The translations under genes were made by a program, and so were the position numbers. From positions 76,525 through 140,524 of the forward strand of contig RDEW01000012.1 in the NCBI GenBank assembly GCA_011109175.1: a DNA stretch of 64,000 nucleotides, in the 5' to 3' direction. The notes below the pieces were generated by a model. That model was not told the DNA's origin. It saw nothing but the letters and a program-made list of their open reading frames with translations, and searched no databases. Positions 2,180 through 56,510 of this stretch are shown here, one piece after another. The stretch comes from Dicyema japonicum (taxonomy: Eukaryota > Animalia > Dicyemida). Position 1 is the stretch's first letter. Every line of letters starts with the position of its first letter.

Positions 2180-2248
2180 ATGGCTTTTTTTAAATATAAT
2201 TTAGGATTATATCTGGCGCCACCAGAGATGGTGAACCACATAACCCAC
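2180..2248 (-). ncRNA. Nested-pseudoknot RNA motif, copy 1 (HDV-ribozyme-like topology, decayed)
   Basis: GUGG-GUU AU GUGGUUC ACC AUCUCU GGU GGCGCC AG [AUAUAA/UUAUAU hairpin] UUAAAAA AAGCCAU; same stem order as four other copies. Confidence 0.55.
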
Positions 2249-2529
2249 GCTAACAATTCAAACTTCCTGGAGCCAAAAGGGAAGAGGTGAAACAGAAGAA
2301 TCAAATAATCATCAATTCATGTAGCCAAATAGCACTACACTCACTTTGGAGCCACTCGGCATAGGTAAATAAAATAAAAATCTTTATAATTATGATTAAT
2401 TATTTTAGAAAAAAAACTGGATATGAGTAATATTACTAAAAAACAGCGACAATTTACTAAAGATTATTATCATATGATTTAGTGCATAATATGATAATCT
2501 AGATACACCATTTTGTTTAATATGCCACC

Positions 2530-2930
2530 GTACATTAACGAATGAAAGCAAAACGCCAAACAAACTCACAAATCATTTGGACAGTGCACAAAAATAAAAT
2601 GGATAAACCTTTGGAGTTTTTTTTAATAAACTGAAAGATAATTATATACGAATGCAAAGACTTTATCCAATGTTATTAAAATTCGATGAAAACAAATTTA
2701 GGTAATAAATTTCACATTCTATTTGTTTTAATTAAATCATACAAAAGTAAACTTATTGCCAAGTCGGGGAATTATCATAATATTGGAGAAACACTAATTA
2801 TGCCTGCTGCAGAAATAATTTTATCGCAAATTCAAATGTGGAATCAGATGAAATATTATATTCAATTCCGTTAAGTAGATCTACTGTTACCGGAAGGATC
2901 GATAATATGGCACAGGATGAATTAAAGGCC
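2530..2930 (+). mobile_element. hAT (Buster/Charlie, ZBED5-like) transposase N-terminal fragment
   Basis: Pieces NESKTPNKLTNHL..VHKNKMDKPLEFF, LIAKSG..HNIGETLIMPAAEII and SIPLSRSTVTGRIDNMAQD, with frameshifts. Confidence 0.7.
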
Positions 2931-3059
2931 AAGTAGCTCAAGGGTCAGAGGTTGAAATTGAATCGTGTTCTTACGACAGTAAATCGTTGTACGGGTTAGC
3001 TAGTTAAAATCACTTCGCGTAGCCCTAAAAAGGTTTCGCTTGAGCCATGCTTTACAGGC

Positions 3060-4700
3060 ATCCTCCTCGCCATCCTCGCACTATGATCGAAAATGTCTTC
3101 CTGATAGTTGACAGTAGAATAATAGGCCTTAATCCATCCAGCGATCCCTCTTTTTCCCCAGGTTTGTATATCGGAATTAAGACTCCATGTCCAATAAAAG
3201 TGAACAGTTAAGTTCCATCGACTCGTTTAATATATCCGTGATTATATTCCCAACAATAACAGGAGTATGTTTTGTCACCTGTTGTTAAGGGAACCCGGTT
3301 TATAAAGGAACCCCGAACATATTTTTAAATTGAAATTATCAATAAATATTAATTTCCATTATAAAATCAAAAAACATTTAAAATTTTAATATATAAGTGT
3401 AAAAATTAATTAATTAAATCTAGCGTGTAAAATACGTTTTGTGACACTTTATAAGGAGGAGTTATCAAAAATTAAATCTTTTAAAGAATCTGATGTGTTA
3501 CTACAAGCCAGTAACAAAAAGAAAGATTTATTGAATTTCTGCATGGACTAAAATTTGGTCACGTAGGCTTTTCTGGTCAGTACATACAAAGTCTACATCA
3601 TCCGTTTATAACAATTCAATTATATCTTCGTATTTATAACCTATTTCCTTTCTCAGTTCCCTGAGAGCAGCTTCGAGGTATATGATGAATAGAACTGGGG
3701 ATATGGAATCCCCTTGTGTGGTGCCCATGTTGGTACTGAAACTCTTTGAGTGCTTAGTTCCTATTTTCACGGATAGAACAGTTTCAGAAAGTAATAGACT
3801 TATTAGTCTCAGGCAGTCCTTGTCATGCAGTTCCTGTAGAATATCCATGAGTTTTTCTCTGTTGATGCTGTCAAAAGCCTTCGTTAGGTCAATTCCTAAG
3901 ATGTAGATGACTTTTTGTAGTTTTGACATATTGATGTAAGCCATCGATGACTCCACATGATATCTGAGGTAGGCCTTCCACTTCTAAACCCACTTTGAAT
4001 TTGGGAAAGGTATTTTTCTACTGACTCTCGTATACAGATAAGAACTATGATCAATAATGTCTTCCTGATAGTTGAAAGTAGAATAATAGGCCTTAATCCA
4101 TCTAGCGATCCCTCTTTCCCCAGGTTTGTATATCGGAATTAAGACTCCATGTCCAATGGAAGTGAACAGTTAAGTTCCATCGATTCGTTTAATATATCCG
4201 TGATTATATTCCCAACAATAACCGGAGCATGTTTTAGTAACTCCCCGGGATGCTATCATGCCATCATAGCGAGCTTAGGTGTATGAATGCATTTGTTACT
4301 TTATTATTGTAATTTTGTTTGTAAGAGGTCTTGGATTTCCAATAAACTTAGGTATATTCACTCCAACTTAATTAAACTGTGCCTCGAAGTGTTTGGCAAT
4401 ATGGTTTATTTTATCCTCTGGGTTTTGTAAATAATAACCCACGTTGTCGCAGATTTTCAGCGACTTTTTCGCAGTTCCTCGTGTAATAATGTAACAGCAG
4501 AAAACATTCGTTTTCTATAGTTTTCAATTTCAATCACCTTATCGTCCAAATATTTGTGCCAGAGGTCATTCGATCGTTTTTTTATCAAATGTGATATTCA
4601 ATTACGTTTTCTCTTTAATGCACTTTATTCGAATTTGAACTTCCCAGTTTCGAACGTAATTCCATTTGCTGTTCTGACAATTCTCTTATTACGGGGTCAT
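3060..4700 (-). mobile_element. RTE-like LINE RT fragments (about 190 bp segment present twice, 3080-3265 and 4035-4225)
   Basis: GIDLTKAFDSINR..GTTQGDSISPVLFIIYLEAALRELR, homologous to the intact element at 22505-25557. Confidence 0.75.
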
Positions 4701-6889: not shown

Positions 6890-7590
6890 TAAATCGGAAT
6901 AGAAGCGCTCCGAAACATCTTTAACTGTTCAATAAACCATAACCAAATTCAAGACATTTGGAAACAGTCCAACATACGCCCAATTCTCAAGCCGGAAAAT
7001 CGAAGAACAACCCCTATTCGTACAGACCCATTGCACTATTATGCTCATCTTCGAAGCTCCTGGAAAAACTCGTTCTACACATCATTTATCCCACCCTTCC
7101 CTTTGCACATCTCCAAAATGGTTTCAGGAGAGACCGATCTACTTCAACACACCTCACCTCATTGAACCAGTTATTATTGAAGCTTTTCTGCAAAACCACA
7201 TCTAAAATCGGTTTTATGCTGTATCGACCTACAAAAAGCCTTCGATCTGTATCAGAAAAATCCTCACTCGAAAAATATTTAGACTATCCATCAACCCGAA
7301 CACAAAATTATGGCTTTTATTTCCTCAGCGGAAGGAAAGAGCGTGTATGCTTGGATGGTATTCGATCAGTCTCAAGAATACTTCCAAAAGAAGTTCCCAA
7401 AGGCTCCCCTGTCTCCTGCCCTATTCAACTTATACCTTTCCGACATTCCCAACCCAGTTATGGAAGACTCGATAATTCTCGCTTATGATGATGACCTACT
7501 CATTATTTCACGTGATCACCTCACGAATGCTTCAAAGAAGTACAAGAACTCTTGCTTCAAATTCAAACTTGGCTACACCAAAACCGGATG
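6890..7590 (+). mobile_element. I/Ingi-like LINE RT fragment, interrupted by the 45-bp array
   Basis: SYRPIALLCSSSKLLEKLVL..QNGFRRDRST, LSPALFNLYLSDIP..LAYDDDLLI; close paralog at 42659-43975. Confidence 0.8.
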
Positions 7591-10500
7591 AACATATCTC
7601 CATAAAAATCTCCACCACTCTATTATACCTGATGAACATAACTCCAGGAAAATCCTCCACGACTCTATTATACCTGATGAACATATCTCCAGGAAAATCC
7701 TCCACCACTCTATTATACCTGATGAACATATCTCCAGGAAAATCCTCCACCACTCTATTATACCTGATGAACATATCTCCAGGAAAATCCTCCACCACTC
7801 TATTATACCTGATGAACATATCTCCAGGAAAATCCTCCACCACTCTATTATACCTGATGAACATAACTCCAGAAAATCCTCCACCACTCTATTATACCTG
7901 ATGAACATATCTCCAGGAAAATCCTCCACCACTCTATTATACCTGATGAACATATCTCCAGGAAAATCCTCCACCACTCTATTATACCTGATGAACATAA
8001 CTCCAGAAAATCCTCCACCACTCTATTATACCTGATGAACATAACTCCAGAAAATCCTCCACACTCTATTATACCTGATGAACATATCTCCAGGAAAATC
8101 CTCCACCACTCTATTATACCTGATGAACATATCTCCAGGAAAATCCTCCACCACTCTATTATACCTGATGAACATAACTCCAGGAAAATCCTCCACACTC
8201 TATTATACCTGATGAACATAACTCCAGGAAAATCCTCCACCACTCTATTATACCTGATGAACATAACTCCAGGAAAATCCTCCACCACTCTATTATACCT
8301 GATGAACATATCTCCAGGAAAATCCTCCACCACTCTATTATACCTGATGAACATAACTCCAGGAAAATCCTCCACCACTCTATTATACCTGATGAACATA
8401 ACTCCAGGAAAATCCTCCACCACTCTATTATACCTGATGAACATAACTCCATGAAAATCCTCCACCACTCTATTATACCTGATGAACATATCTCCAGGAA
8501 AATCCTCCACCACTCTATTATACCTGATGAACATATCTCCAGGAAAATCCTCCACCACTCTATTATACCTGATGAACATAACTCCAGGAAAATCCTCCAC
8601 CACTCTATTATACCTGATGAACATAACTCCAGGAAAATCCTCCAACCACTCTATTATACCTGATGAACATAACTCCAGGAAAATCCTCCACCACTCTATT
8701 ATACCTGATGAACATAACTCCATGAAAATCCTCCACCACTCTATTATACCTGATGAACATAACTCCAGGAAAATCCTCCACCACTCTATTATACCTGATG
8801 AACATAACTCCATGAAAATCCTCCACCACTCTATTATACCTGATGAACATAACTCCATGAAAATCCTCCACCACTCTATTATACCTGATGAACATAACTC
8901 CAGGAAAATCCTCCACACTCTATTATACCTGATGAACATATCTTCCAGGAAATCCTCCACCACTCTATTATACCTGATGAACATATCTCCAGGAAAATCC
9001 TCCACCACTCTATTATACCTGATGAACATAACTCCAGGAAAATCCTCCAACACTCTATTATACCTGATGAACATAACTCCAGGAAAATCCTCCACCACTA
9101 TATTATACCTGATGAACATAACTCCAGGAAAATCCTCCAACTCTATTATACTGCTTGATGAACATAACTCCATGAAAATCCTCCACCACTCTTTATACCT
9201 GAATGAACATATCTCCAGGAAAATCCTCCACCACTCTATTATACCTGATGAACATAACTCCAAGAAAATCCTTCCATCCTCCTCCACACTCTATTATACC
9301 TGATGAACATAACTCCAGGAAAATCCTCCACCACTCTATTATACCTGATGAACATATCTCCATGAAAATCCTCATCCACCACTCTATTATACCTGATGAA
9401 CATAACTCCAGGTAAAATCCTCCAACACTCTATTATACCTGATGAACATAACTCCAGGAAAATCCTCCACCACTCTATTATACCTGATGAACATATCTCC
9501 ATGAAAATCCTCCACCACTCTATTATACCTGATGAACATATCTCCAGGAAAATCCTCCACCACATCTATTATACCTGATGAACATATCTCCAGGAAAATC
9601 CTCCACCACTCTATTATACCTGATGAACATATCTCCAGGAAAATCCTCCACCACTCTATTATACCTTGATGAACATAACTCCAGAAAATCCTCCAACCAC
9701 TCTATTATACCTGATGAACATAACTCCAGGAAAATCCTCCACCACTCTATTATACCTGATGAACATATCTCCAGGAAAATCCTCCACCACTCTATTATAC
9801 CTGATGAACATATCTCCAGGAAAATCCTCACCACTCTATTATACCTGATGAACATAATCTCCAGGAAAATCCTCCACCACTCTATTATACCTGATGAACA
9901 TAACTCTCAGGAAAATCCTCCACCACTCTATTATACCTGATGAACATATCTCCATGAAAATCCTCCACCACTCTATTATACCTGATGAACATATCTCCAG
10001 GAAAATCCTCCACCACTCTATTATACCTGATGAACATATCTCCAGGAAAATCCTCCACCACTCTATTATACCTGATGAACATAACTCCAGGAAAATCCTC
10101 CACCACTCTATTATACCTGATGAACATAACTCCAGGAAAATCCTCCACCACTCTATTATACCTGATGAACATAACTCCAGGAAAATCCTCCACCACTCTA
10201 TTATACCTGATGAACATAACTCCAGTAAAATCCTCCAACCACTCTATTATACCTGATGAACATAACTCCAGGAAAATCCTCCACCACTCTATTATACCTG
10301 ATGAACATATCTCCAGGAAAATCCTCCACCACTCTATTATACCTGATGAACATATCTCCAGGAAAATCCTCCACCACTCTATTATACCTGATGAACATAT
10401 CTCCAGGAAAATCCTCCACCACTCTATTATACCTGATGAACATAACTCCAGTAAAATCCTCCACACTCTATTATACCTGATGAACATAACTCCAGGAAAA

Positions 10501-11697
10501 TCCTCCACCACTCTATTATACCTGATGAACATATCTCCATGAAAATCCTCCACCACTCTATTATACCTGATGAACATAACTCCAGTAAAATCCTCCAACA
10601 CTCTATTATACCTGATGAACATAACTCCAGGAAAATCCTCCACCACTCTATTATACCTGATGAACATATCTCCATGAAAATCCTCCACCACTCTATTATA
10701 CCTGATGAACATATCTCCAGGAAAATCCTCCACCACTCTATTATACCTGATGAACATATCTCCATGAAAATCCTCCACCACTCTATTATACCTGATGAAC
10801 ATATCTCCAGGAAAATCCTCCACCACTCTATTATACCTGTGAACATATAACTCCAGAAAATCCTCCACCACTCTATTATACCTGATGAACATATCTCCAT
10901 GAAAATCCTCCACCACTCTATTATACCTGATGAACATATCTCCAGGAAAATCCTCCACCACTCTATTATACCTGATGAACATAACTCCAGAAAATCCTCC
11001 AACACTCTATTATACCTGATGAACATACTCCAGGAAAATCCTCCACCACTCTATTATACCTGATGAACATATCTCCAGGAAAATCCTCCACCACTCTATT
11101 ATACCTGATGAACATATCTCCATGAAAATCCTCCACCACTCTATTATACCTGATGAACATATCTCCAGGAAAATCCTCCACCACTCTATTATACCTGATG
11201 AACATAACTCCAGTAAAATCCTCCACCACTCTATTATACCTGATGAACATATCTCCAGGAAAATCCTCCACCACTCTATTATACCTGATGAACATAACTC
11301 CAGGAAAATCCTCCACCACTCTATTATACCTGATGAACATATCTCCAGGAAAATCCTCCACCACTCTATTATACCTGATGAACATAACTCCATAAAATCC
11401 TCCACCACTCTATTATACCTGATGAACATACTCCAGGAAAATCCTCCACCACTCTATTATACCTGATGAACATATCTCCAGGAAAATCCTCCACCACTCT
11501 ATTATACCTGATGAACATAACTCCAGGAAAATCCTCCACCACTCTATTATACCTGATGAACATATCTCCAGGAAAATCCTCCACCACTCTATTATACCTG
11601 ATGAACATATCTCCAGGAAAATCCTCCACCACTCTATTATACCTGATGAACATATCTCCAGGAAAATCCTCCACTTTATTATACCGGATGAACATAT
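7584..11697. repeat. Tandem array of a 45-bp unit, about 91 copies (CCTGATGAACATATCTCCAGGAAAATCCTCCACCACTCTATTATA)
   Basis: Head-to-tail repeat with variants ATATCT/ATAACT and CAGG/CATG/CAGT/CAG-; 4114 bp divided by 45; unit matches single-copy LINE sequence at about 43363-43410. Confidence 0.98.
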
Positions 11698-22504: not shown

Positions 22505-25500
22505 ATTATTATTATTATTATTATAAGCAACTACATAGAATCATATAAACTATAATTCTATTCGTGCCGCGTCGAACAATCCTCTTAATTAGCCTTTCCC
22601 ATCCCCTCCTGTCCGATGCCAAGTTCCGCAGACTACTAAGGTCTTCACCGTCCTTTAGTTGTCTGGTTACTGATCTCAGGTCACCATTAAGGACTTCCGG
22701 AAGAGTTATTCTTGGACGACCTCTGAACTTCTCCCCTGACGTATCGAAGTATTCTTCCATGACGACGTTTGCTGGCGTGTCTTGTTCCAATCTGAGAATA
22801 TGGCCAAACAATCTCCAGCGAGCCTTCATGATCATGGTGCTCAGAGGTCCGGAACCGCATCTTCTATATAAATTTTCACTCCCTACACGCATTGGCCACT
22901 TTAGTCCCAAGAGAGACCGAAGTTGCCTTCTGTGAAAGGAGTCAAGGTTTTGTTCGTCCGTTTTCGAAATTCCCCACGTCCCAGAGTTGTATGTTAGTAT
23001 GGGCCTCACGAACGCCTCATACAACCTGAGTCGGAGTGATGGCCCGACCGAGCATTTTCTTATCCAACATTTCATAAGTTTTTGCATAGTAACCGTAGAT
23101 AACAATTTTCTTCTTGCAATGTCTTCGGAGTCTCCGAGAAGAGAGCCAAGCTTTACGGTCTTCCTCCAACATTCACTATTGCGTAGTTCCATCCGCTTAA
23201 TTTCAACAATATCCGTTTTCTGAACATTCAGTGATAGACACCATTTGGCCAAACAGCCTGATGCAACCTCCAAGAGACGTAAGAGTGCTTCTTTGTCAGT
23301 CGAGATAAAGTCAACATCATCGGCATACACGATCTCCATAATATCATTGTTGTAATACTTCCGGAGGTCTTGCAGAGCCGATTCAAGGTATATAGCAAAC
23401 AATACTGGGGAAAGGGAATCTCCTTGGGGTGTGCCCACTGTTGAAATAATTTCCCGTGACAAACATTTTCCAATACGCACTCGTAACCTCGTGTTTGATA
23501 AGAGTATCCGTATCAGAATAACCGAGTCCTTATCCAGGAAACTTTCAAGCACTTCAATGAGTTTTCCCCGACGGACAGTGTCGAAAGCTCTGGTCAGATC
23601 AATTCCAAGGATAGTCTTTGAGCTCCGGAATCTTTGTTGAATAGCACATTGCCATCTATGGCACCATACTACATCAGCCGTTGATCTCCCTGTCCTAAAA
23701 CCACTCTGGCTCTGGGCCAAGTACCCGTCCACCGGCTCTTGGATCCGATTAAGAGTAATTAGGGCAAGGATCTTCCTTAAGGTGTTTAGAAGGATGACAG
23801 GGCGCAGGTTTTCAACTGGCCCAGGGGGTTTATTACCTTTTTGAACTGGTACTAGTATCCCCTTTCCAATTTCTGAAAAGTCCTTGTTTTCTATCATGTC
23901 ATTCAGCAATTTTGAGAGTTTATCTGCAAGTTCTGGAGGGCCAAATTTTAGCAATTCAGATGGTATATTATCTGGTCCTGGAGAGCGCCCAGATTTAAGT
24001 TTCCTTATCGCCATGCAAACCTCCTCCGGTGAAATGATCCGTTCAAGTGTTGTGTTCTTAGGCGTGAAATCTGATTTTTCTCCTTTTACAAAGAACAGTT
24101 GTTCAATATGCGATGCTATGAACTCTGTCTGTTCTGCAACATTTCCTATTGTTTTTCCATTTCTGTCATGCAAAATAAGTTTCACTGATTGGCTCTTCCT
24201 CCGTATTAGTCGTATAGCCATGAATGTCGCAGCATTGTCTTTAAGGTTTTCTACCTCTCTGATCTTGCTTTCCAACTGACTAGTGTGATGTAGTCTGTTT
24301 AGGAGTTTGATTTTTCTCTCAATTTGCCTTCGTTCTTGTTTCAGTTTGCAAACAGTCTGAGGATCGACAGTATTTTCGGATCTAAGCCTTAAGTTCTTCT
24401 GCAAATTCAATAGGGCTGACACTTCCGGGTGACGCTGACTGCTATGGGGTTTAAGTTCCCCCAAATGTTTGTCAGCAGCGGAAATGATCCCTCTCCTAGT
24501 TTCGAGCCATGCCTTTCCTGGTGAAAGATCCGATGCCGTATTATTAATTGAATCCGATACACATTCTTTATAGTCTGCTTGTACTTTTGGTGAAGAGCCC
24601 AAGAGTTCAGTCATATACCTTCTTGATCGCGTGGAATCTCCACCACGATGTGTTTGGAAGAAGCATCTTCTATTAGTTATCCCGTAGAGGAACTCCTCCG
24701 CAGTTGGACCAAGTCTTAAGCTGAATCTTGCTGACACAATTTTGTGATCACTGTTAACAGTTAGTCCTCCATAAGATCTCGAGTCCCGTAAGAGAGATTT
24801 GTCTTTTACTCGACACAGAATATAATCGATCTGATTATAAATCCTTATCAGATTTCCGGTGGTCGATAGTCTAGTGCCCATCCACGTTGTCTTGTGGCGT
24901 GCGGAATGTTGGAATTGAGTATTGCACAGGAATAAATCAAAGGATTCGCAGAAATATGCCAGAGCAGTACCAGAATAGTTCCTGATCCCCCTTCCATGTG
25001 GTCCAATAAAACGTTCGTGTCCTTGATGTACCCCAGCTTTAGCATTCCAATCACCAGCGATAAAGAGGAACGATGAAAACTTCAGAGAAGATACGACCTC
25101 GACAAGTTCTTCGTAGAAAACGTCCAATTCCTCTGGGTTTTTGGCAACACGGCCACTATGTGGGGCGTACACGTTCACAATGGAAATTAGTTGCCTGGAC
25201 TTCCCTTTGGGTCCAATAAGAAATTGAATAACACATATCCTGTCATCAATTTTCCAATATCGATGTAATCTGGGGAGCAAATTCTTGTGAACAGCGAAAC
25301 CCTGTCCATAGTGTTTACAGTACGATGGAAGGAGGATTAGTCTGTAGTCTCCAAGGTTTTCATCGAGTCCTTTTCTGAGCTTCGTCTCTTGGAGACAGCA
25401 AACAGAGCATCCATATTTTGCAAGGTCCAGACATAGTTGGTGCCTCTTCGACCAGTCATTAAGGCCCCTGGCATTGAAGGTAAGGGTAGAAAACCAAGGA

Positions 25501-25557
25501 TTATTCAATTGCGTATTAGACATGTGTGCCATAGAGGGACGTCACCACCTCAACCAA
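22505..25557 (-). mobile_element. Intact RTE-like LINE with (TAA)n tail and 15-bp TSD
   Basis: TATTCTATCTGATGT at 22490-22504 and 25558-25572; single ORF; 25-nt 5' leader. Confidence 0.95.
22521..25532 (-). CDS. APE endonuclease-reverse transcriptase, 1003 aa, uninterrupted
   Basis: TFNARGL..QETK, GDWNAK, NQIDYIL..SDH (APE); QSGFR, DLTRAFD, GTPQGDSLSP, YADD (RT); ARWRLFGHILR (RTE-like C-terminus). Confidence 0.95.
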   Translation of the reverse strand: MAHMSNTQLNNPWFSTLTFNARGLNDWSKRHQLCLDLAKYGCSVCCLQETKLRKGLDENLGDYRLILLPSYCKHYGQGFAVHKNLLPRLHRYWKIDDRICVIQFLIGPKGKSRQLISIVNVYAPHSGRVAKNPEELDVFYEELVEVVSSLKFSSFLFIAGDWNAKAGVHQGHERFIGPHGRGIRNYSGTALAYFCESFDLFLCNTQFQHSARHKTTWMGTRLSTTGNLIRIYNQIDYILCRVKDKSLLRDSRSYGGLTVNSDHKIVSARFSLRLGPTAEEFLYGITNRRCFFQTHRGGDSTRSRRYMTELLGSSPKVQADYKECVSDSINNTASDLSPGKAWLETRRGIISAADKHLGELKPHSSQRHPEVSALLNLQKNLRLRSENTVDPQTVCKLKQERRQIERKIKLLNRLHHTSQLESKIREVENLKDNAATFMAIRLIRRKSQSVKLILHDRNGKTIGNVAEQTEFIASHIEQLFFVKGEKSDFTPKNTTLERIISPEEVCMAIRKLKSGRSPGPDNIPSELLKFGPPELADKLSKLLNDMIENKDFSEIGKGILVPVQKGNKPPGPVENLRPVILLNTLRKILALITLNRIQEPVDGYLAQSQSGFRTGRSTADVVWCHRWQCAIQQRFRSSKTILGIDLTRAFDTVRRGKLIEVLESFLDKDSVILIRILLSNTRLRVRIGKCLSREIISTVGTPQGDSLSPVLFAIYLESALQDLRKYYNNDIMEIVYADDVDFISTDKEALLRLLEVASGCLAKWCLSLNVQKTDIVEIKRMELRNSECWRKTVKLGSLLGDSEDIARRKLLSTVTMQKLMKCWIRKCSVGPSLRLRLYEAFVRPILTYNSGTWGISKTDEQNLDSFHRRQLRSLLGLKWPMRVGSENLYRRCGSGPLSTMIMKARWRLFGHILRLEQDTPANVVMEEYFDTSGEKFRGRPRITLPEVLNGDLRSVTRQLKDGEDLSSLRNLASDRRGWERLIKRIVRRGTNRIIVYMILCSCL

Positions 25558-26450: not shown

Positions 26451-29028
26451 GGTTCTAGGTAAATTCATCGCCGGTAATTCATCGCTGGTAATTTCATCGC
26501 GACCACGTGGGTTCTTGAAAGAAGAGGTCGAAATTTTGATTTTTTATATTATCATTAAAATGTAATTTTGGAGATTAATTTGACGATATGAGTCACGTGC
26601 CCAGATCCCCAAGATAGAAGAAATTTGAAAACCTCAATTCTCCAAATAGTGTTAAACTTACTCAACGATGTGCACCACACGTGTGTGTATTGGTTAAAGT
26701 GATATAAAAATTATTGATTATCTTACTGATTATTGATTAATAACAAAGGTCAAACTTTAAGTTAATATTTATGATAATATAATTTTTAGAAAACAAGTTT
26801 ATGACAATTATTAACAAAAACATTGTGTTAATTTCTAAAATGCTAAATTATAGGCAATGCCTTTTAAATAGTCAAGAATTTCGCGATTATCGAAGTCATT
26901 TACAATGCGTTGAATTCTTAAAGCATTATCTCTGTATTTTTTCTTTTGTGTAGGACCTTCCCCACCAGCAATATACTGTTCAATTTTAATTTCATTTTTT
27001 GCTTGTTCTTTCTTCAAAACATCAATAAACTTCCAAATCGTAGGATGACACGCTCCAATTAAAGAATTAAAAGAATGATGCCATCCTTCGCAAGAGTTAT
27101 TCGTTTTAGGCCCAGCAACTCTCGCTGNCATTTTTTGCTTGTTCTTTCTTCAAAACATCAATAAACTTCCAAATCGTAGGATGACACGCTCCAATTAAAG
27201 AATTAAAAGAATGATGCCATCCTTCGCAAGAGTTATTTGTTATAGACCCAGCAACTCTCGCTGCTTCAAAACAATTCCACAATTCATGGGAAAAACGTGG
27301 ACAACGACGTACTTGACGGCGGTCGGGACGTCCTATCCAAATATCTTCTACATAATCCAGTACAGGTTGAGCTTCTTCTGGGAAACTGTTGTAATCGCAC
27401 AAATGTTCAAAATAATGAACAACGTGTAATGTTGGGACAAATGCCAGCGCCGCAATCATGTGCATTTTCAGAGCGAATTCTGAATCTCTTTGATATAATA
27501 ATTGTAGTCCCTATGATTGGATGCATCTAAATATGGATTGGGACAAATGAAAGAAACAGCCCTTCGTAGTAGCATCAGGAAATATAATATTAAATCCATT
27601 TATAGCTGCTTTTTCGAAATCAGTGATAATTGTCCTCGGTGATAACGATGGCTCCAATGATTTTAATTCCGAAAAAACTTTTTTATAGCTTTCTTCCGTT
27701 CTTTTACACATTAAAATGTATATAAGTGGTAATACATCATTATTCTCTAGTCCATGAATCGTATATAATTGATTAAACAAATATGGGACAGTCTTAAAAG
27801 TACCATCCGCATACCAAAAGTTTGTAGTGGAAAGCAAATTTAGATTTTTTCTCGTTGTAAAAATTATTGTTCTGTTAACACTGTCTTCACTATCAAACAA
27901 TAGAAAAGGTTCATTGGCATAAGAGTATCTGTATTCTGGAGGTATTCTTAACTGGTCTATGTTAAGTGGATTAGGAGGAGCTTGATCTTTTGTATTTCTT
28001 GAATTTCTAATGTTTCTTTTAATTAAAGAAGCTATGGGTAGTCGGGCAGACACCTCCAATGGCAAACCCACACACACTTCAGTCGTAATAATATGTAGAT
28101 TATCTTGTGATGCAAGAGCTCTTCTTTTTATTTTTTGAGTAATTCTCTTTGATTCGACATATGCAGCATCACCAGCATGATTGTGTTCGTTGACTCTTTT
28201 AATAATGATGTCTCCCTTGGTGTGTACTCTCGCTTTACATTTAATTTTGTAGTAGGATTCACATTTCCATAACGTGACTTCGCAATTAAATTTTTCAAAA
28301 CAGTAAATGTATTTATCTTCAAAAAGTTTTCTCTTATTTCTATCACTCATTACAAATTGCAAAGCCATGCTGTCAAGATATAAGAAATTAGCGAAAAAAT
28401 ATCACTTTATAGTAATCAATTATGATAATGACGATTAAGTACAAAAGAATTCAAGGGCATTATCACCACATTACAAAAGAATTCAAGGACATTATCACCA
28501 GATTATAAGCTACTTTATCAGTTAAAAGAAACACAATTACATGCAACCATTACTCGTGTGTTAAAGATAGAGATGAATACTGTCCTCAGCACTAAAGAAA
28601 AAAGGCCAATTTTATAGTTCAATTGTCGTATATAGATGAATACTGACAGAGTTATTTATTTTATTATTTGTTCGCCACAGGCGTACAATCTTTGGTAAGC
28701 CTAGCAAAAACAGTCATTGGTAATTAATCCAAGGAGGGAACGCAAAAGAGAACGTCTGCTTGTGACAACTAAATTGATCCCGCCAATAATACATGGCAGG
28801 CATACGTCAACTTCTGAAGAGAGGTGAAAAAATAGGTCCTCTCTCTTCAGTTTTCATAGTTCCTACCGTCACGGATACGTGATTCCTATCGCCGAATAAT
28901 CTCCAAAATCGCAATTTAACTATAATATATAAAATCAAAATTTCGACCTCTTCTATCTAGAAACCAGCCCACGTGGTTCTTTGATTTAACTGGAATGAAT
29001 TTACCTCGCGATGAATTTACCGGTTACC
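26451..29028 (-). mobile_element. Mutator-like (MULE) DNA transposon with about 100 bp imperfect TIRs and 9-bp TSD
   Basis: Left GGTTCTAGGTAAATTCATCGC versus right reverse complement GGTAACCGGTAAATTCATCGC; AACTAAAAG at 26442-26450 and 29029-29037. Confidence 0.92.
26835..28368 (-). pseudogene. FLYWCH-MULE transposase with one in-frame TAG (27511-27513) and an N-joined duplication
   Basis: WKCE..CKARVH..HNH; WYADGTFK, IITDFE, GCFFHLSQ, TNNSCEGWH; the frame continues across the TAG as IQS*GLQ..FALKMHMIAALAFVP. Confidence 0.88.
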
Positions 29029-34734: not shown

Positions 34735-34843
34735 TTGGTTAAAATTAAGAATTTTAATTTAAAATAATTATTTATAATTTAATTTTATATATTTATGATT
34801 CCGGAATCATTATTAACCTATTATTAATTCCACCAGGAGACAA

Positions 34844-34915
34844 TTTTCGATGTGGTTCACCTTCACGTGGAGAAAATTGGATACCAGTATCAATCTGGCA
34901 ACTAAAAGAACCACA
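34844..34915 (+). ncRNA. Nested-pseudoknot RNA motif, copy 2 (at LINE 5' end)
   Basis: UUUUCG AU GUGGUUC ACC UUCAC GU GGAGAA..[GAUA/UAUC hairpin]..CUAAAA GAACCAC; 8-bp UGUGGUUC/GAACCACA stem. Confidence 0.6.
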
Positions 34916-37900
34916 ACTATTCCTCTGTCACCTTTTCAACGACCTCTGGGATGTCGGACAGAATGATGGCGGCTATCGAGCGGGCGCGTAGCTTTCGCTC
35001 CCAAAGATCGGATTGGCTACTCCTAATCCTTGCTGGGGACATCAAACAGAACCCCGGGCCCAATAAGAACGGGAAATTCCTCAACATCATGTCAAAATAA
35101 ACGGGCTCACACGCAAATCAAATGAACTTTTTTCATTTCTAACTTCCCACAAAGTTGATATTGCCATGCTACAGGAAACGAAACTATCAAAAAGTCAGCG
35201 CTTCCACACTACAAAGATTACTCAATTATCCGCCGTGGTCGACCGAATTCAAACAGAGGAGGTGGTGTTTTCATACACAAATCTATTCCATTCTTCAATA
35301 CTTCCGCTCAGACACAAGCTCTGTTTGAAGATGAACATCACATCGAACTTACTTCCGTCTTGTTGAAAATAAACCACACAAGGTATACATTTGTAAAAAT
35401 TTACATCCCGCCACCAAGTCCCAGTGTGAAACATTACTCCCCAAAACTAACCGAATTGCAAAAGATTGAAAATATGATAATCTGCGGAGACCTAAATGCA
35501 AAAGATCCTCTCTGGCTAATCGGCCAAAAGAGTAATGAGAGGGGGTTTCAGGTCCTCTCTCAACTAGAACAATTAGTTATCCTCAATGACAGGAAATCAC
35601 ACACTCGAACAGCTTCCAGACCTGGACACTCTAATACATCACCCGACCTCACACTATGTTCTCCATCACTATCTTCGGCGATATCTTGGAGAATTGTATA
35701 TGACCTACACTCGGACCATAATCCAATTCTACTGTCAATCGAACTACTCTCGCCTATTGTTAGGCATCGGAAAACTATAACGAATTACAAACGTGCAAAA
35801 TGGGATTCATTCAGAAAAGAAACAGAAAAATTTCTATCCGACTTTTCCGTTGAGAATTTCATACCGCAATGAAATTTTTTAATGAGGTCATCCTCAGTGC
35901 CGACAAGAAATACATTCAAGAGGACTCATTGCAGACTATAATCCCAATTTCACTAAGGAAATTATTGAAAAGATTCATACAAGACGTCGACTCAAAAAAT
36001 AAAGAATTTATACAACCGAACAACCTTAATAGCGAAATTACAGAATTAATCAACAAGAGGAAAACAATTTCATCACAAAAATTAACCACCAAACAAAACT
36101 AAAGGAATTTTAGGGTATTTTACGTGGAATTCAGTCGAAACAAAATAGAATGAAGATAACCCACGCCACCAGTATTGACAAGAATCAAACACCACGTGAT
36201 TACACTCATCAGGCAGATGTCATAATGGACCACTACGCAAAAGTGAGTCACATAGATATGAACAAATGCTCCCGTTTATGCAAATTGAATAACGTTCAAA
36301 CTCCTCAAGGAAATCCGATTGAGATCAGTACGTCGGATGTCGAAAAACTCATCAAAACGCCAAAAATTCTCCTGCCAAAGGGCTTGATGAAATCTGCATT
36401 TAAAGCACCTGGGAATGCAAAAACTCAAAGCAATAACAGACATAATTTCTGTGTCCATCAACACCTGCAGAATTCCTGCACTATGGAAAAAATCCAAAAT
36501 AATCCCAATCCTGAAGCCCAAGAAAGATCCTTCGGATCCGGGATCTTTCAGACCAATTTCACTACTATCTGTAGTATCGAAAATTGTTGAACGTGTTGTA
36601 CTGAAACTAATATCGAAGTATCTTCCCTGATTTTCAACATGGATTTCGTCCACAATACTCAACATTTGCACATCTCTCTATCCTAACTCAACATATCGCT
36701 GATGGTTTTAACAATTATAATCCTCCCAAACGGAATATCCTCGCATCGATCGACCTAACCAAAGCTTTCAATCGAATATCAGGGCGCGTGCTAAGTAACA
36801 AAATTATTGTATCTGGAATTCCTCCACGTCTTCAGAATGGTTAACAAATTTCCTCTCTGGAAGAATTGGTCGAGCTGAAATTTTGTCATGTCTATCTCAT
36901 TACAGACTCCTTCCAAATGGAGTTCCCCAAGGCTCCGTTTTATCACCTACCTTATTCAACTTACACCTAAACGACATTCCAATCAATTCCACTTCATTGC
37001 ATGCGGATGACATGATTGTTGCCTCTAAAGACATAGACATTAACGAAGCAACAAAAGATGTTCAGATCCACTTGAACACTCTTAAAGAGTGGCTTGGAGC
37101 AAACCACCTATCCCCCCTTACATTGAAATCCACCGTCACTGTATTCACGTCCAACCGCCGCCAACTAAATTTTTAACCAATTTTAACAATTCATGGACAA
37201 CCACTCACCGCTACGAAACATCTCAAAATACTCGGAGTTATTTATGACCAACTACTAACTTTCTCTAAACGTGTGAAGGAACAATGTACAAAGGCCTCTC
37301 ACAAGATCAACATACTTAAAACTGTGTCAGGCCATTCCTTTGACCAAAGCAAAGAAGCCCTAACCATCATAAACAATTCATTCTAACAACTATTAACTAT
37401 GCAAGCCCTTGCTGGTCAACCTCTGCCTCTCTTACTTCTATTGACAAATCACAAAAAGTACAAAACATCACGCTCAGGATAATTACTGGATGTCTCAGAT
37501 CAACCCCTGTCGATCATTTACATTGGGAGTCAAAGATCCTTCCAATTGGAGACCATCTGGAAATGAGAGCCCTGCAGTTCCTCTCCCAAGCCTAAAGTCT
37601 AGAACATCCCTGCCACTCCCTATGCAAGCCGCAGAACAAAATGAAAATTTTAATGACAACCAGTGACCTGTCTCGAATGTTATCATCCATTCCTTCCATC
37701 CCCAATGACAGGAGTAGTCTGAAACAGAAACACGTTTTTGTTTCTACGAGAAGCATCCGAAGACTCAGAGACAATAAAATATAACATCGACCCCCTCTTC
37801 CAATAGACCAATCAGAATCCTCTCTTTCAAAGGACGTGCGAGTAAACCTGGCTCATCTACGATGTGGGCACCACCCATATCTACCAACATATGATATACT

Positions 37901-39478: not shown

Positions 39479-39738
39479 CATTTTACTTATTTTTTTATTT
39501 ACTATTATTAAATTTTAACTTTTTAGCTTAGTTCGCCCTAATTATTGATATCGAAAATGTGTCAGTTCCGGAAAGCAACACCGGGAAAAGATGAGAATAT
39601 TGTTGAGAGAAGCAGAGATTACCTGATGATAATTTCCTTTTAATTACAGCTAATAGAATCCAGGAGAACAAACAACATCTCGAGTTTCCAGTTGAGGCAT
39701 AACATCCAGGCATAAGGAGTCTGGATGGGAAAAAGCAA

Positions 39739-39801
39739 ATGGTTCTTTTTGGTGTTTTTCTACACTGAGCGCCCCACAAAAGGTGAACCACATGACGCCA
39801 C
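39739..39801 (-). ncRNA. Nested-pseudoknot RNA motif, copy 3
   Basis: GUGGCGUC AU GUGGUUC ACC UUUUGU GG GGCGCU CA GUGU AGAAAA ACAC CAAAAA GAACCAU. Confidence 0.6.
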
Positions 39802-39899
39802 CTTAAAATTTCAATGGAATGGGTCAGGAATCAGTTAGTTTATTTTAACCCGTGGTCTTTTTTTTATAATTATTATTACCCTATATTTTCCGGATAAAT

Positions 39900-43975: not shown

Positions 43976-44746
43976 AAAGCTCATCAGGATTGTCGGGATC
44001 ACCTAATTAATTTCAAGAGATTAAATATTGGTGTTTTTGGGTTAATAATAATCATTAATAGGAACGCGACTACAGAGAACCAGTTATAAAGACGATGCGA
44101 ACTTGCGTGGGCTTTAGGGAGGAACATCGTGCCCATCTGAAGTCCTTCTTGGAGCGTAAGGGAATTAGTTCTGTGTTACTGTGGTCTTTGGATTTTTTCA
44201 TTATATTTGATTTCCAAATGGGATTACTCACTGTGTGTTACAAACAATAATAAACAAGGTGTCACCTGGTTCCCATATTTTCATCAAAATCAAATTGACT
44301 AACCTTTTTTCACTTTTCCTTCCGTAATGGATATAGATAGCCATGAGGTTTTTTATAATCTCTCTGGTTTTTTTTGTTTGCAACATTATATGTAATTTCA
44401 TTCCTACTTGTTTTTCTACAAATATAAATGGAATTCCAAACTAAGTATTGATAATCTTCCACGTATTAAAACTATCTCCTCATAAACGGATGTGCTTCCT
44501 GAGCTGTGATATTTTATGTTTTAGATGGTACTTAAATAATAAATTATAATGTAACCTCTCACAATCAAACTAGATAACTTTGTTATAATGTTCTCATAAA
44601 TATTACGACTCGTGGTCACTAAACGCAAAAGTAGATTATACAAAACAAGTTCTTTAGAGTTTCGTCGCGTGGCCCATGTGGTGCTTCGCGGCTAATTGGT
44701 GATATTTCTGTTTGTTCGTCTGTTCCTTCTCTTTTTTCCTATTAGA

Positions 44747-44811
44747 GTGGCGTCATGTGATCCACTTGTCTAGGTGGTGCCCAGTGCCAGGCCGGCATGA
44801 AAAAAAATCAT
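44747..44811 (+). ncRNA. Nested-pseudoknot RNA motif, copy 4 (orphan)
   Basis: GUGGCGUC AU GUGAUCC ACU UGUCUA GGU GGUGCC CA GUGCC AGGCC GGCA UGAAAAAA AAUCAU. Confidence 0.55.
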
Positions 44812-44989
44812 TTGCTCTCCCCCACTTTACTGGAGGGGTTTCCACAACTGCAAGTATGGACGTCTTACCCTTTATGCTGATTCCGGATGGACTCTGTAGA
44901 AGTGGAAACTGGATAAACTTAATTAGTTATTTACTTTAACTTCTTTCTCGGTGTAATTAATTTAGAGTTTCGTAAAGAACATATTTTAA

Positions 44990-45970: not shown

Positions 45971-47171
<1,201 letters not shown>

Positions 47172-52700: not shown

Positions 52701-52799
52701 CGCAAACAGAATTTGTGATTAAACGAGTAAGATTTTTAAAATTGCAAAAAATATGTAATAATTTTTTTGTTATAGACAATTATTTAACAAAGAAATCAA

Positions 52800-52930: not shown

Positions 52931-53214
52931 GCGCAAGAACCATTATGTAATAATAAAAATAACAATAACAATTAGGTTGTTACGAGCAATAATGTTTTCC
53001 ACAACAGCTGTTTGTCGAGAACAATAGGTTGCCTCGGTTATTGAAAGCACGCACTCCAGACTCGGTCGTGTCCACAGAGGTGGATGGGCTATTCTCTTGG
53101 AAGGGTTCAGGTCTAATTTTGGAGAAAAAATAAAAATGCCTGAGTTCAGAAAACTGATAACGCCCAAAAACGGCAACAATTACCAAATGAACATGATTCG
53201 AAGGGAGGCCTGAT

Positions 53215-53520
53215 ATGTCTTCGACATCTATTGAGGCCAAGTTATATGCTTGTTGTGAACGTACTTTTATTGAGGATTTACGGACGAATCAGTCAATTGA
53301 TAATTCTTCAAGACCAAGACTACCTACTAAAAGGACCCGCCTATTACTACCCGAAAGTCATAGAGGGTTCAGAAAAGGAAGATCAACAGCTGATGCAGTA
53401 TGGAGTCACAGATGGAGATGTGCAACACATCAAAGATATTGCAATGCCACCCACATTCTGGGAATAGATCTATCAAAAGCATTTGACTCGATTAACAGGA
53501 ACAAATTGATTTATTTTTAT
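53215..53520 (+). mobile_element. RTE-like RT fragment
   Basis: GFRKGRSTADAVWSHRW..ILGIDLSKAFDSINR. Confidence 0.8.
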
Positions 53521-53574
53521 TTTAATAACCCCGGGAACACTGAGAAAGAAAGACAAAAGAGTCAGACAGTTAGG

Positions 53575-56510
53575 TGATCCCAGTCCTCGCAATCACTTGT
53601 GCCATTCGACGTCTGTGATCTTCCATCGTCCCCACTACTTTCCGGAAGAGCCTTCTCTCGGTCTTCAGAGGAATCCGATCGGGGAGGGGAATTTCTTATC
53701 CAATCGGTTTTCTCTTGCCATGGGGAGGATCAGGCAAAGCGGATTTCCATCTTCCTCACAGAAGCGAAGAAATCCGGAGCCACGACTACGGATCTTAGCT
53801 TCCATGAGTAGTGGGTCGACTGTTGATCCATTACGTGGGGAAAGCATACTGATTGTTTTCCTGTATATCGAGTTGATTCTTTGGACCAAAGACTCCGATA
53901 GCCCGAATCTCCATGCAACGGAGGCATACTCAATGGCAGGCGCGATTGTTTGTTGGTAGAGTGTAGAAACGGAAAAGTCCATGTTCCTCGTGGTCCTCCG
54001 AACAAGGGCGCGTATAACGTTAACTTTCTGGAGGCCCCTGGTGATCATGTCTGTTGCGTGGGAGTTGAATTTGAGAAGGCTGTCGTACTTGACTCCAAGG
54101 ACAGTGGGGGACCTTGTCACTGGAATCCTAGTGGGACCAATGAAAAGACTCGGTTCATCCTTGGAACGACGGTCCGACGTGAATGTGGAACAGATAGACC
54201 TTGGTTGCAGAAATCGTTAGTCGATTGCCAACAATCCAATCATGGAGAATGTCCAATTTTGTCTGAGTTTTAAGGGATGCGACTTGCGTCGAGCGGTTCC
54301 GTATTGCAATGACTACATCGACTGCGTAGGATAATAGCAGGGAATCTTCGTCTCCATCATTAGGTAGGTCGTGTAGGAAAGGTTGAATAGAATTGGTGAA
54401 AGTGGAGACCCCTGGGGTACCCCGTTCGGTAGTAATCGTGATCTAGATCTGAGATCACCACTGACTACTCTTCCACGTCTTCCAGACAAAAAGTTGGCCA
54501 GCCATAATTTCACATTCGGACGAATATTAGTAGAAAATATTTTTCCAACCAGATTTTCCTCGAAACAGTGTCAAAGGCTTTGTTGATGTCAATAGAAACC
54601 AAGATTGTGCGTTTGTGAGGCGGAGGATGGGTGTTAAAACCGTCGGCAATGAACTGCGATAAAGTTGCCAAGTATGTAGCGGTGGACCTACCGCGGAGGA
54701 AACCATGTTGAAATATAGGACGCGGAAGATACGGAATAATGACTGATAATACAAGTTTCTCCATAATTTTTGACAGTGTGCTGGTAACGGAAATAGGCCT
54801 GTAGGATGCAGGTTCTGGTCTCTAGTTCCCGCCTTCAATATCGGTCTGATGATAGAATTCTTCCAAATCTTGGAATAATATTATAGTTAATGGACAGGTT
54901 GTATATATGCGTGAGGTAGCCAATTGCGTAGTGGCTTAGGTGTTTTAGGTGAATAGAAGATACTTTGTCAGGCCCGCACGCCCGTGAGCTCTTTAATCTG
55001 GTGATCACATCCAAGACTTGGTCATCTGTGAATAGTTCGTGGTAAGGTTCCTTCTTCGGTTTATGGGCACGCACCTTAATGTCCAGGTGTTTCGAGAATG
55101 GTTTGAAGCTAATTCCAGCGTAATGTTTCATAAGGGTGTTAGGATGTAGGTGGCATAAGTGTTCAGGAGAAGACTTTCCGGTTCCGTCTGCATCATCCAG
55201 CTCCGACTTGACTTGTTTAAGAGTTTTCCAGAAATGTCGGGATGTACTTTTCCTGTCGAGGTGGTTAACTAGATGCTGCCATTTCTTGTCCTTGTGTTCT
55301 TTTATGCTCTGACAGATCTTTTATTCAGCTGTCTGAGGACTGTCAAAGACTTCATGTCCAACAGATGGCATCTCTTCAGCCGGTCTCTTTGTTTTATAAG
55401 ACTTATTGTATAAGAGCTGAGGGTAGGAATATATGACGAATAAAAATATGGTCAGCTTTCTGAATGGCAGCGCTGATAATTTCTGCGGCCTCGTCAATAG
55501 AGCGCATTGGGAGGATAATCTCCGGCCAAGAATTTATCCACAAGGTTACTGAAACCAGACCAGTCAACCTTCGTATAATCCTTGAATTTTTTTGATTCCG
55601 CCGGCCGTCTCCTGTATCGTCGAAGACCTCTCAATTTTAGAAGGATTGGATTGTGATCACTGGAGAAGCCGTAAAAGACGTTCCAGGAAATGAGTCCAGC
55701 CAGAGAAGGTGAGCATAGTGTTAAGTCGGGGGATGTGCAGCTATCAGTCATCCTTAATGGGGTCCTCGTATGTGAGTTAGGGTTGTTCAGTATAATCAGG
55801 TCAGGAAGATAATTTGCAATGAGTTCCCCTCGGTTATTAGAGGATTGGGAAGTGAGCCAAACTGGATGTCGTGCATTAAGATCCCCACATAACAGTAGAT
55901 TTTTCAATGTTGAAATGCGTGATAAATCAGGGGTGTAAGATGACGGACACGATCCTTGTGGAGGAATATATAAATTAGCCAAATGGATCCAAAAGGACGG
56001 GAATAACTCGATTTTGACAGTAATCTGCTCCAAAGTCTTGTCGGAGCCAAGAAGCTCTGAGGTTCGTTGAGTTGTATCCATAAAAGGAATATCGTTCTTT
56101 ATAATAGTAAGTAGTCCTCCTCCGCGTCCTCCCTGACGATCTTTACGGATCACTGTGTATCCGGGAAAAGAGGGTGTTGGTATGGAGGGAGATAGCTTGG
56201 ACTCCTGTATTAAAGCGAGGTCAGCCTCATTTTCGCGGAGGCTGGCCCGGAGTTCAAAGATTTTCTTCCTGTTCCCATTCGTATTCAGTTGTATAATTGT
56301 AAAACCTCTCCATGGAACAGAATTGGTTTCGACGTCCCCACATAGAAGAATCAAAAGTCTGGATAAATGGGGACACCAGACAGAGTCGAAACACAGGAGA
56401 TGAGAGGACCACCGGACGGTGGGGAGAAGCTGTTGGCTCTTTTCGTTCCATTTTGGAATGGGTGACACCGTTTCTGGTGAGCCACACGACATCACGCTAA
56501 CATTCAAAAT
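53575..56510 (-). mobile_element. Near full-length degenerate Ingi/Vingi-like LINE with 5' pseudoknot and 2A-like peptide
   Basis: LLILLCGDVETNSVP, QESKL, GDLNARH, SDHNPI, CGPD, QHGF..ST, DINKAFD, PQGSPLSP, VLGVKYD; C-terminus EDHRRRMAQVIARTGIT*. Confidence 0.82.
56432..56495 (-). ncRNA. Nested-pseudoknot RNA motif, copy 5 (at LINE 5' end; J4/2 = CGAAAA)
   Basis: GUGAUGUC GU GUGGCUC ACC AGAAAC GGUGUCAC CCA UUCCA AAA UGGAA CGAAAA GAGCCA. Confidence 0.65.

Follow-up and report, generated by a model that had tools for sequence, protein, structure and literature searches.

The 5′ ends of long interspersed nuclear elements (LINEs) are a known site of self-cleaving ribozymes that fold like the one of hepatitis delta virus (HDV), and such HDV-like ribozymes have been documented in six LINE clades (PMC5786205). 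They cut at the 5′ edge of helix P1, and the sequence upstream of it is lost from the template (PMC3774820). Their P1 comprises about 6-7 base pairs (bp), with the 3′ strand straight after P3′ (PMC3774820). In the L1Tc element, such a ribozyme and promoter activity occur together, along with a 2A peptide and with non-autonomous partners that have the module in common (PMC3383444). A 2A peptide 40-80 residues from the N-terminus is a known design of LINEs with only one open reading frame (ORF) and an APE endonuclease (PMC3708506). Here we describe a related module in 64,000 nucleotides (nt) of the genome of Dicyema japonicum (contig RDEW01000012.1, positions 76,525 to 140,524 of the forward strand). 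This whole stretch is called the window, and positions are given in its own coordinates. Five copies of the module, named c1 to c5 in 5′-to-3′ window order, are decayed members of five separate repeat families, three of them LINEs and two short non-autonomous repeats. A sixth family, c6, is a short element met in the flanks of loci fetched from the same genome. The reading that we favour, with confidence somewhat better than even, is that this is a 5′ module of single-ORF LINEs with APE and reverse transcriptase (RT) domains and of short elements derived from them, that it is of HDV-type descent, and that c2 is a cutter and the other families are non-cleaving.

A close parallel is found in the L1Tc/ingi elements of Trypanosoma with their Pr77 signature and L1TcRz ribozyme (PMC3185411, PMC3383444, PMC4035085). 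In both systems an HDV-like double pseudoknot of about 77 nt stands at the 5′ end of a single-ORF APE LINE, the fold lies in the first ~80 nt, and an N-terminal 2A and then the endonuclease follow (PMC3708506, PMC3383444). In both, non-autonomous partners (NARTc, RIME and SIDER in the trypanosomatid case) carry the 5′ module. SIDER2 of Leishmania has two Pr77 signatures (PMC4035085), and the short elements described here carry a partial copy at the head and a full internal one. Some of the derived L1Tc/ingi copies are inactive. The differences are also clear. The host genome here is animal-like, and the likeness to Pr77 that is drawn here is one of design. Most families here have a templated leader of 7-15 nt before P1, whereas L1TcRz cuts at +1, and the short elements here have 87-120 nt ahead of their full module.

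The module and the repeats that carry it

A covariance model was built from 10 family-typical copies taken from elsewhere in the genome, with P2, P3 and four P4 pairs as its only structure. In the window it matches exactly the five sites that a preliminary description had picked out from the letters (E 1.3e-11 to 2.1e-9 for 64 kb), all at the coordinates listed there, and no further match was obtained in the 64-kb window at E ≤ 1. The order of parts in that description, P1 - AU - P2 - ACC - 6-7 nt - GG(U) - P1′ - hairpin - C/A-rich joiner - P2′, holds as well. Across the 67.5-Mb assembly this model yields rough candidates in the tens of thousands; 150 of them were scored, all with E below 1e-7. 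Thus, the motif is a very abundant repeat module and not a set of five isolated genes. The genomic sampling comprises 78 loci; covariation was drawn from six families, and 5′ ends were tallied in 10-30 copies per family, with two exact-pattern counts in addition. When the genome was searched with each copy as query, separate families were obtained:

56432-56495, minus strand: c5, at least 152 candidates; LINE 5′ end, homology extending over more than 1.6 kb
39739-39801, minus strand: c3, 114 candidates; LINE 5′ end, homology extending over more than 1.6 kb
34844-34915, plus strand: c2, 110 candidates; LINE 5′ end, homology extending over at least 0.8 kb
44747-44811, plus strand: c4, ~1,631 candidates; within a non-autonomous element of ~330 nt
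2180-2248, minus strand: c1, ~375 candidates; within a non-autonomous element of ~335 nt

The modules and the elements around them are made up as follows:

34842-34915, plus strand: c2 module; P1 34842-34848, J1/2 GA, P2 34851-34858, P3 34859-34861, L3 UUCACGU 34862-34868, P3′ 34869-34871, P1′ 34872-34878, GG 34879-34880, P4 region 34881-34901, J4/2 CUAAAA 34902-34907, P2′ 34908-34915, AUG 34850-34852
34842-35638, plus strand: 5′ part of the c2-family LINE; leader peptide from the AUG inside the fold, 2A at ~35035-35060, endonuclease ORF 35360-35872
39739-39812, minus strand: c3 module and leader; leader 39802-39812, P1 39794-39801, P2 39785-39791, P3 39782-39784, L3 39776-39781, P3′ 39774-39775 (one U lost here), P1′ 39768-39773, P4 39752-39765, J4/2 CAAAAA 39746-39751, P2′ 39739-39745, AUG 39793-39791
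39652-39812, minus strand: 5′ fragment (160 nt) of a c3-family LINE; family homology ends at 39652, downstream hairpin 39703-39728
44747-44811, plus strand: c4 module; P1 44747-44754, P2 44757-44763, P3 44764-44766 (C>T here), L3 44767-44772, P3′ 44773-44775, P1′ 44776-44781, P4 44784-44798, J4/2 44799-44805, P2′ 44806-44811, downstream hairpin 44819-44838
44666-44955, plus strand: c4-family non-autonomous element, ~330 nt in full copies; module begins ~87 nt in, head 44669-44684 is a partial P1-J1/2-P2
2180-2262, minus strand: c1 module with a c5-like leader; leader 2249-2262, P1 2242-2248 (broken here), P2 2233-2239, P3 2230-2232, L3 AUCUCU 2224-2229, P3′ 2221-2223, P1′ 2215-2220, P4 2193-2214, J4/2 2186-2192, P2′ 2180-2185, downstream hairpin 2146-2172
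2043-2363, minus strand: c1-family non-autonomous element, ~335 nt; module begins ~120 nt in
56432-56509, minus strand: c5 module and leader; leader 56496-56509 with ATG 56503-56501, P1 56488-56495, P2 56479-56485, P3 56476-56478, L3 AGAAAC 56470-56475, P3′ 56467-56469, P1′ 56461-56466, P4 56446-56460, J4/2 CGAAAA 56440-56445, P2′ 56433-56439, downstream hairpin 56409-56422
54888-56509, minus strand: 5′ 1.6 kb of a c5-family LINE; frame open from the 5′ end through the fold, 2A (degenerate here) at ~56314-56339, then the APE endonuclease

Families c2, c3 and c5 are the 5′ ends of single-ORF LINEs with APE and RT domains and an N-terminal 2A peptide, and the frame downstream of the LINE copies encodes the APE endonuclease. 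The preliminary description noted that ribozymes with this fold head retroelements, and these three families do head LINEs, by their APE, RT and 2A; c1 and c4 lie inside elements of ~330 nt. All five window copies are somewhat decayed relative to their family-typical forms. Elsewhere in the genome, two c3 copies on different contigs (L047 and L048) are 99.76% identical across 1.65 kb, which indicates that the c3 family moved very recently.

The distance from the 5′ end of the short elements to the module is 87 nt (c4) or ~120 nt (c1). These elements are flanked by target-site duplications, for example of 23 nt in L061, and a search of them for a tRNA, 5S or 7SL head found none. The c1, c4 and c6 elements start with a second, partial copy of P1-J1/2-P2 (..CGYGTGGCGCC ATGTGGTGC..):

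L063:1448-1500, L075:1417-1470, L056:1790-1840 and window 44669-44684: partial head copies in short-element families c1, c4 and c6

The GGCGCC of the head is the perfect complement of the internal P1′ GGCGCC, so that a long-range alternative P1 from the head would be possible. As a candidate, this distal P1 formed by the 5′-terminal GGCGCC was set aside: the motif is invariant and thus beyond covariation, and 5-8 nt upstream of it are kept too. The c4 head is also able to form a 7-bp hairpin, AGCCGCG/CGTGGCT. Finally, the stretch TTTGAAT(T)GTTAGC, reported earlier as common to copies 1 and 5 upstream of P1, is real and lies at 2249-2262 and 56496-56509.

A double pseudoknot with covarying P1 and P2

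The nested double pseudoknot P1-P2-P3-P3′-P1′-P4-P2′, in which P1 and P2 cross and covary, is real. Pairs were counted in 87 hits of the model with P1 added as a pseudoknot; P1 was outside the model, so that the alignment is not fitted to it. Standard pairs fill 85.5% of the cells; with the 3′ partners moved along by 1-3 columns (slid controls) the figure is 31-56%. Neither the observed pairing nor the covariation score was matched by any of 500 shuffles. Changes on both sides are seen in 15 of the 20 pairs. The share of paired cells is 87% for P1, where four of six pairs are compensatory, and 92% for P2, where six of seven are.

Because many of the 87 rows are close relatives, the count was repeated on a plain MAFFT alignment with two copies per family. 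Here 85.6% of the cells pair, against 33-55% in the slid controls, and eight pairs show double changes (three each in P1 and P2, plus two in P4), a number reached in 8 of 500 shuffles. Counted by family, independent events are found in both P2 and P1. Position 4 of P2 goes from G-C to A-U in c4 and c6, position 5 from U-A to C-G in c5, position 6 from U-A to C-G in c4 and c6, and position 2 from U-A to G-C in c6. At position 3 of P1, C-G becomes U-A in c5, and in c2 the entire P1 is replaced. Hence the statement that pairing survives sequence change is upheld for P1 and P2 by compensatory double changes, but P3 never covaries. The minimum-energy fold contains P2, P3 and P4 in some families and P1 and P4 in others, as is expected where two helices cross.

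P4 had been described as a hairpin of unrelated sequence in every copy, and indeed each family has a different hairpin, with registers that are not shared. The registers proposed for P1 fared less well. In c1 the window copy is broken, reading GTGGGTT against GTGCGTC in the family. The register GUGAU/GUCAC given for c5 depends on a private G>A of that copy and is replaced by the family form GGUGUC/GUCACC with one U-U. In c2 a P1 helix exists as claimed, but it had been drawn too short: it is AAUUUUC/GAAAAUU, 7 Watson-Crick pairs starting from 34842.

Core, element starts and start codons

The general plan of the HDV-like ribozymes of LINEs is shared by the module: the helix order, a P1 immediately after P3′, the helix that sets the cleavage site in such ribozymes, a variable P4, a C in J4/2, and a place at the element start with the ORF running through (via PMC5786205, PMC3774820). 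P1 is 6 bp long in c3, c4 and c6, 5 bp with a U-U in c5, 5 bp in c1 and 7 bp in c2. Its 3′ strand, P1′, directly follows P3′, with one A between GG and P1′ in c2 and c6. For the core we use the numbering and loop sequences of the genomic HDV ribozyme. The L3 of c2, UUCACGU, and the HDV loop UCCUCGC have U1, C3, C5 and G6 in common. The GG after P1′ of c2 can pair with U2-C3 of L3 as a possible P1.1, and J4/2 reads C-U-A-A-A-A. In c6, L3 is UUACUGA, with U and G kept, and J4/2 is C-A-A-G-A. The L3 of c3, UUUUGU, keeps the first U and the penultimate G and, at 6 nt, is one base shorter.

The other families depart further from the LINE ribozymes. The L3 of c1 (AUCUCU), c4 (UGUCUA) and c5 (AGAAAC) is without the conserved guanine near the 3′ end, and that of c1 is without any G. 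In R2 elements this guanine is important, and its loss went with inactivity (PMC3774820). Candidates for P1.1 were sought by eye in the family-typical forms: in c3, c4 and c6 the CA after P1′ finds UG at varying places of L3, c5 has no candidate, and no consistent P1.1 was found outside c2. J4/2 is A-rich and longer than in the LINE ribozymes, and its family-typical form begins with C throughout: C-AAAAA in c1 and c3, C-UAAAA in c2, C-GAAAA(A) in c4 and c5, and C-AAGA in c6. Located five to six bases ahead of P2′, this C is what c2, c3 and c5 usually have; in c1 and c4 no other letter is as common, and in c4 it also closes P4. The preliminary description gave C at the catalytic position in three copies and U in two, which is correct for the letters of the window, but the U of c1 and c4 is decay. 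It also called the core atypical, which for c2 and c6 is less so than claimed.

No Rfam family matches anywhere in the window at gathering thresholds. In scans by E-value, a sister copy of c2 aligns with RF02682 (HDV ribozyme, F. prausnitzii) at full length from element nucleotide 1, with 11.8 bits against a gathering threshold of 44 and E 4.8. P1, the CC...GG of P3, L3 (UCUaCGU vs UUCACGU) and J4/2 (GGCUAAGA vs CUAAAAGA) line up. This end-to-end alignment at a score far below gathering may be taken as a weak pointer, to resemblance rather than membership. No HDV family appeared in the same kind of scan of c5, c3 (window and family copy), c6 and two short elements. HDV-like ribozymes tolerate much core variation (PMC3774820, PMC3185411, PMC4035085); in R2 the catalytic C and four further positions are fixed, L1TcRz has a single-pair P1.1 and C1, and search descriptors have been over-strict (PMC3774820, PMC3185411, PMC4035085). 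Activity is therefore not settled by sequence alone. With its 7-bp P1 at nucleotide 1, 7-nt L3 with U1 and G6, possible UC/GG P1.1 and C-U-A-A in J4/2, c2 is a plausible self-cleaving HDV-like ribozyme.

The nearest proxy for a cleavage test in genomic data is where copies start relative to P1. In c2, unrelated flank abuts (A)AATTTTC in 12 of 12 copies, and AAUUUUC is perfectly complementary, by 7 Watson-Crick pairs, to GAAAAUU one base after the GG of P3′. Thus, P1 begins at element nucleotide 1, as in L1Tc and Drosophila R2. Such starts at P1, expected of a ribozyme that cuts there, are seen in c2 only and not in c3, c5, c1, c4 or c6. Full-length c3 copies start with GAATTTTCTC, then GT, then GGCGTC, and others end at scattered points of the 10-nt leader; genome-wide, at least 5 nt of it (TTCTC) precede P1 in 13 of 24 copies with the exact core. 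In c5, nearly all copies have a leader of 8-15 nt, (ATTTTGA)ATGTTAGC, before P1 (27 of 30). Six c5 copies carry a leader variant with a 3-nt duplication, ATGTTGTTAGC. It co-occurs with the L3 change AGAAAC>AGAAAT in 6 of 6, against 3 of the 24 other c5 copies (hypergeometric 1.4e-4), and it preserves the frame (171 nt vs 168). The c5 leader is thus inherited through retrotransposition, and coding. For the short elements, ten copies were used that had been found without a head-containing query, two in the window and eight in locus flanks. Nine have the 5′ head upstream of the module, none of the ten starts at P1, and one (L069) is undecided. In every family but c2, the RNAs that were reverse-transcribed are uncut at P1. 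A partner for the c3 and c5 leaders, as an extended or alternative P1, was sought by eye and none was found.

Some c5 junctions are odd. In L012:1470-1510, at a LINE 5′ junction, the leader and adjoining bases (AATTATAATGTTAGCG) stand twice in tandem; at the L027 junction (minus strand, ~30 nt upstream of the copy) a stray GTTAGCGTG lies ~20 nt upstream; and at L005:1480-1515 an inverted leader copy lies directly upstream. These may be traces of template jumps as reverse transcription came to its end.

The start of c2 bears on the origin of its P1. Its first seven bases, AATTTTC, match the leader of c3 (GAATTTTC), and a P1 strand of the c3 type is missing. At the position of P1′, c2 has an extra GAAAATT followed by GGATACC; in the MAFFT alignment the latter stands opposite GGCGCC, the P1′ of the other families. 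It would appear that the old P1 strand disappeared from c2 and that a new P1′, complementary to the former leader, was acquired, although the direction of change is unproven. By this replacement P1, and any cleavage site with it, would have moved to the very end of the element, which is a strong argument that a P1 helix is needed.

In the LINE families the start codon lies in or just before the fold. J1/2 together with the first P2 base makes up the AUG of c3 (GUC AUG UGG UUC ACC). A 2A motif, LLLSGDIEQNPGP, stands 50 codons further on in this frame; 8 of 10 copies have no stop in between, and the endonuclease comes next. The AUG of c2 is within the fold as in c3, 62 codons upstream of LILAGDIEQNPGP, and the 2A is in frame without stops in two of the five copies where the motif was located. 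In c5 the AUG of J1/2-P2 is out of frame, and the ATG that is in frame with GDVETNPGP is one carried by the leader, 9 nt upstream of P1. This leader ATG is present in 27 of 30 copies, in 14 of which it is in frame with 2A without stops. The 2A, with the motifs GDIEQNPGP and GDVETNPGP, thus begins 50 (c3), 62 (c2) or 55-57 (c5) codons after the AUG, with APE directly next. The conserved letters of the module are translated as V-M-W-F-T in c3 and c2 and as C-H-V-A-H in c5, and the peptides upstream of 2A are otherwise unrelated among families. Since the frame differs between families and the fold persists in the non-coding short elements, selection appears to act on the RNA and not on the peptide.

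Several other features were recorded in the window. A tandem satellite with a 45-bp unit occupies 7583-11696 (91 copies, 95% matches) and accounts for a strong C-over-G skew and for the long Pfam-less ORFs 7848-9287 and 9885-10982. On the minus strand, 22521-25532 is an intact ORF of 1003 amino acids with an APE endonuclease and RT. It was considered as a partner of the module and rejected: the endonuclease bears no relation to the c5 one, and the sequence upstream has no module. This ORF belongs to a different LINE clade and is possibly still coding. The remaining features are a DNA transposon remnant at 27511-28368 (minus strand), an ORF that has a FLYWCH zinc finger along with a MULE transposase domain, a separate RT fragment at 58986-59732 (plus strand) and a mitochondrial-carrier exon at 62253-62828 (plus strand; Mito_carrier, E 1.6e-46).

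Possible roles of the module

The preliminary description left a choice between a new cleaving ribozyme and a non-cleaving pseudoknot. The outcome is split by family, with the cleaving type pointing to c2 and the non-cleaving one to c3, c5 and the short elements, where the data fit a fold that is kept without cutting of the copied RNA. The favoured reading is as follows. A double pseudoknot of 65-75 nt and one further hairpin are laid over the ORF start of LINEs, from which the short elements would be derived, and the module's most likely ancestors are the HDV-like ribozymes of LINE 5′ ends. Read-through transcripts of c2 are probably trimmed by it so that they begin exactly at the element start. 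In c3, c5, c1, c4 and c6, as the genomic copies show, the sequence upstream of P1 is copied into new insertions from template RNA uncut at P1, and c1, c4 and c5 have also lost the L3 guanine. The non-cutting families would keep the fold under selection for pairing, for a role other than cleavage.

Most likely this role would be that of a structured 5′ end of the mRNA, cap-independent or positioning the AUG, 7-18 nt from the end. The fold perhaps recruits the ribosome and perhaps protects an uncapped end. We prefer a ribosome-positioning 5′ end because the RNA end is only 7-18 nt away from the AUG, which sits within a stable pseudoknot or just ahead of one. The 2A would then release the endonuclease-RT from a peptide dictated by RNA structure. 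The first bases of the leader, (G)AATTTT, are alike among the other families and may mark a transcription start of their own, and the fold may further serve as a handle common to short elements and their LINE partners. A more far-reaching version is tentative, and we hold it to be rather doubtful: an HDV fold turned, in most of these families, into a non-cleaving 5′ module would drive unconventional initiation, 2A would discard the RNA-dictated peptide, the fold, and not just a 3′ tail, would couple short elements to the LINE machinery or the ribosome, and c2 would have rebuilt its P1.

Several points weigh against the favoured reading. The position of the AUG is the sole ground on which a role in translation start is suggested. 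A search of sequencing runs for the sequence turned up four runs from one study, all stored as contigs and none recorded as RNA. P3 (ACC/GGU) is invariant and so without support from covariation. Nested-only folding energies are unremarkable (z 0 to -2, not significant), as is expected for a pseudoknot, and were not used as support. The spacing after the C of J4/2 is 1-2 nt longer than in the HDV form. The RF02682 match of c2 has an E at chance level, and unrelated chance matches of similar E occur on c6 and none on c3. Finally, c3 retains the U and G of L3 and might still cleave some of its RNA, in which case the uncut molecules alone could account for the copies with a leader.

This last point can be extended to all families, which would then be active HDV-like ribozymes with partial or regulated cutting at P1; the cleaved RNA would go into translation or be lost, and only the uncut, leader-keeping fraction would yield new copies. 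We rate this as unlikely. It agrees with a J4/2 C kept in the family-typical form of every family and with P1 pairing maintained through compensatory change, but a cut at P1 in c5 would remove the only in-frame AUG. The U and G of L3 are retained in c3 and c6, but the G is absent in c1 and not near the 3′ end in c4 and c5, a loss that was accompanied by inactivity in R2 (PMC3774820), and no consistent P1.1 is seen outside c2. Tolerance of core variation, as with the single-pair P1.1 and C1 of L1TcRz (PMC3774820, PMC3185411, PMC4035085), speaks in favour of this reading. A cut in the short elements would separate the head from the rest; a ribozyme there causes 5′ truncation according to Kojima (PMC5786205), and no copy seen here starts at P1.

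Still less likely, in our judgement, is that no family cleaves, and that the module is a structural 5′ element for ribosome recruitment, exonuclease block or protein binding whose HDV likeness is topological, by convergence or very old descent. The leader retained in most families and the start codon in or beside the fold in all three LINE families would suit it, as would the lack of any Rfam HDV family at threshold anywhere scanned. The start of c2 at P1 could equally be a transcription start; yet the 7-bp P1 at nucleotide 1, U-N4-G-N in L3, the GG/UC pairing and C-U-A-A of c2 are all placed as in a working ribozyme, and HDV-like ribozymes are documented at the 5′ ends of LINEs (PMC5786205). 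That the conservation reflects a DNA-level internal promoter or an N-terminal peptide, with incidental helices, is very improbable: the first ~20 nt of the module (the P1-AU-P2 5′ strand) do appear again, by themselves, right at the 5′ terminus of the short elements, which fits a promoter or initiator role like that of Pr77 of L1Tc (PMC3383444), but such a role, which may coexist with the fold, cannot explain covariation, given the compensatory double changes in P1 and P2 and slid controls far below the observed pairing, and the peptide frame differs between families, and non-coding elements have the fold too.

That LINEs can start with HDV-like ribozymes is already known, as is the combination of a ribozyme and promoter hallmark with 2A and non-autonomous partners in L1Tc. 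What the present families add is that, in one genome, related and recently active families carry the same fold in forms that range from a canonical-looking cutter (c2) to a copied RNA left uncut. They also add a start codon embedded in the fold or set just before it, and abundant short elements with an internal fold, where 5′ truncation by a working ribozyme is expected (Kojima, PMC5786205). Family c2 is an example of the replacement of a P1 helix, showing how a cleavage site can move if that reading is true. Together, these families would offer a natural series for roles of the HDV-type fold besides cutting, such as translation start or protection of the 5′ end.

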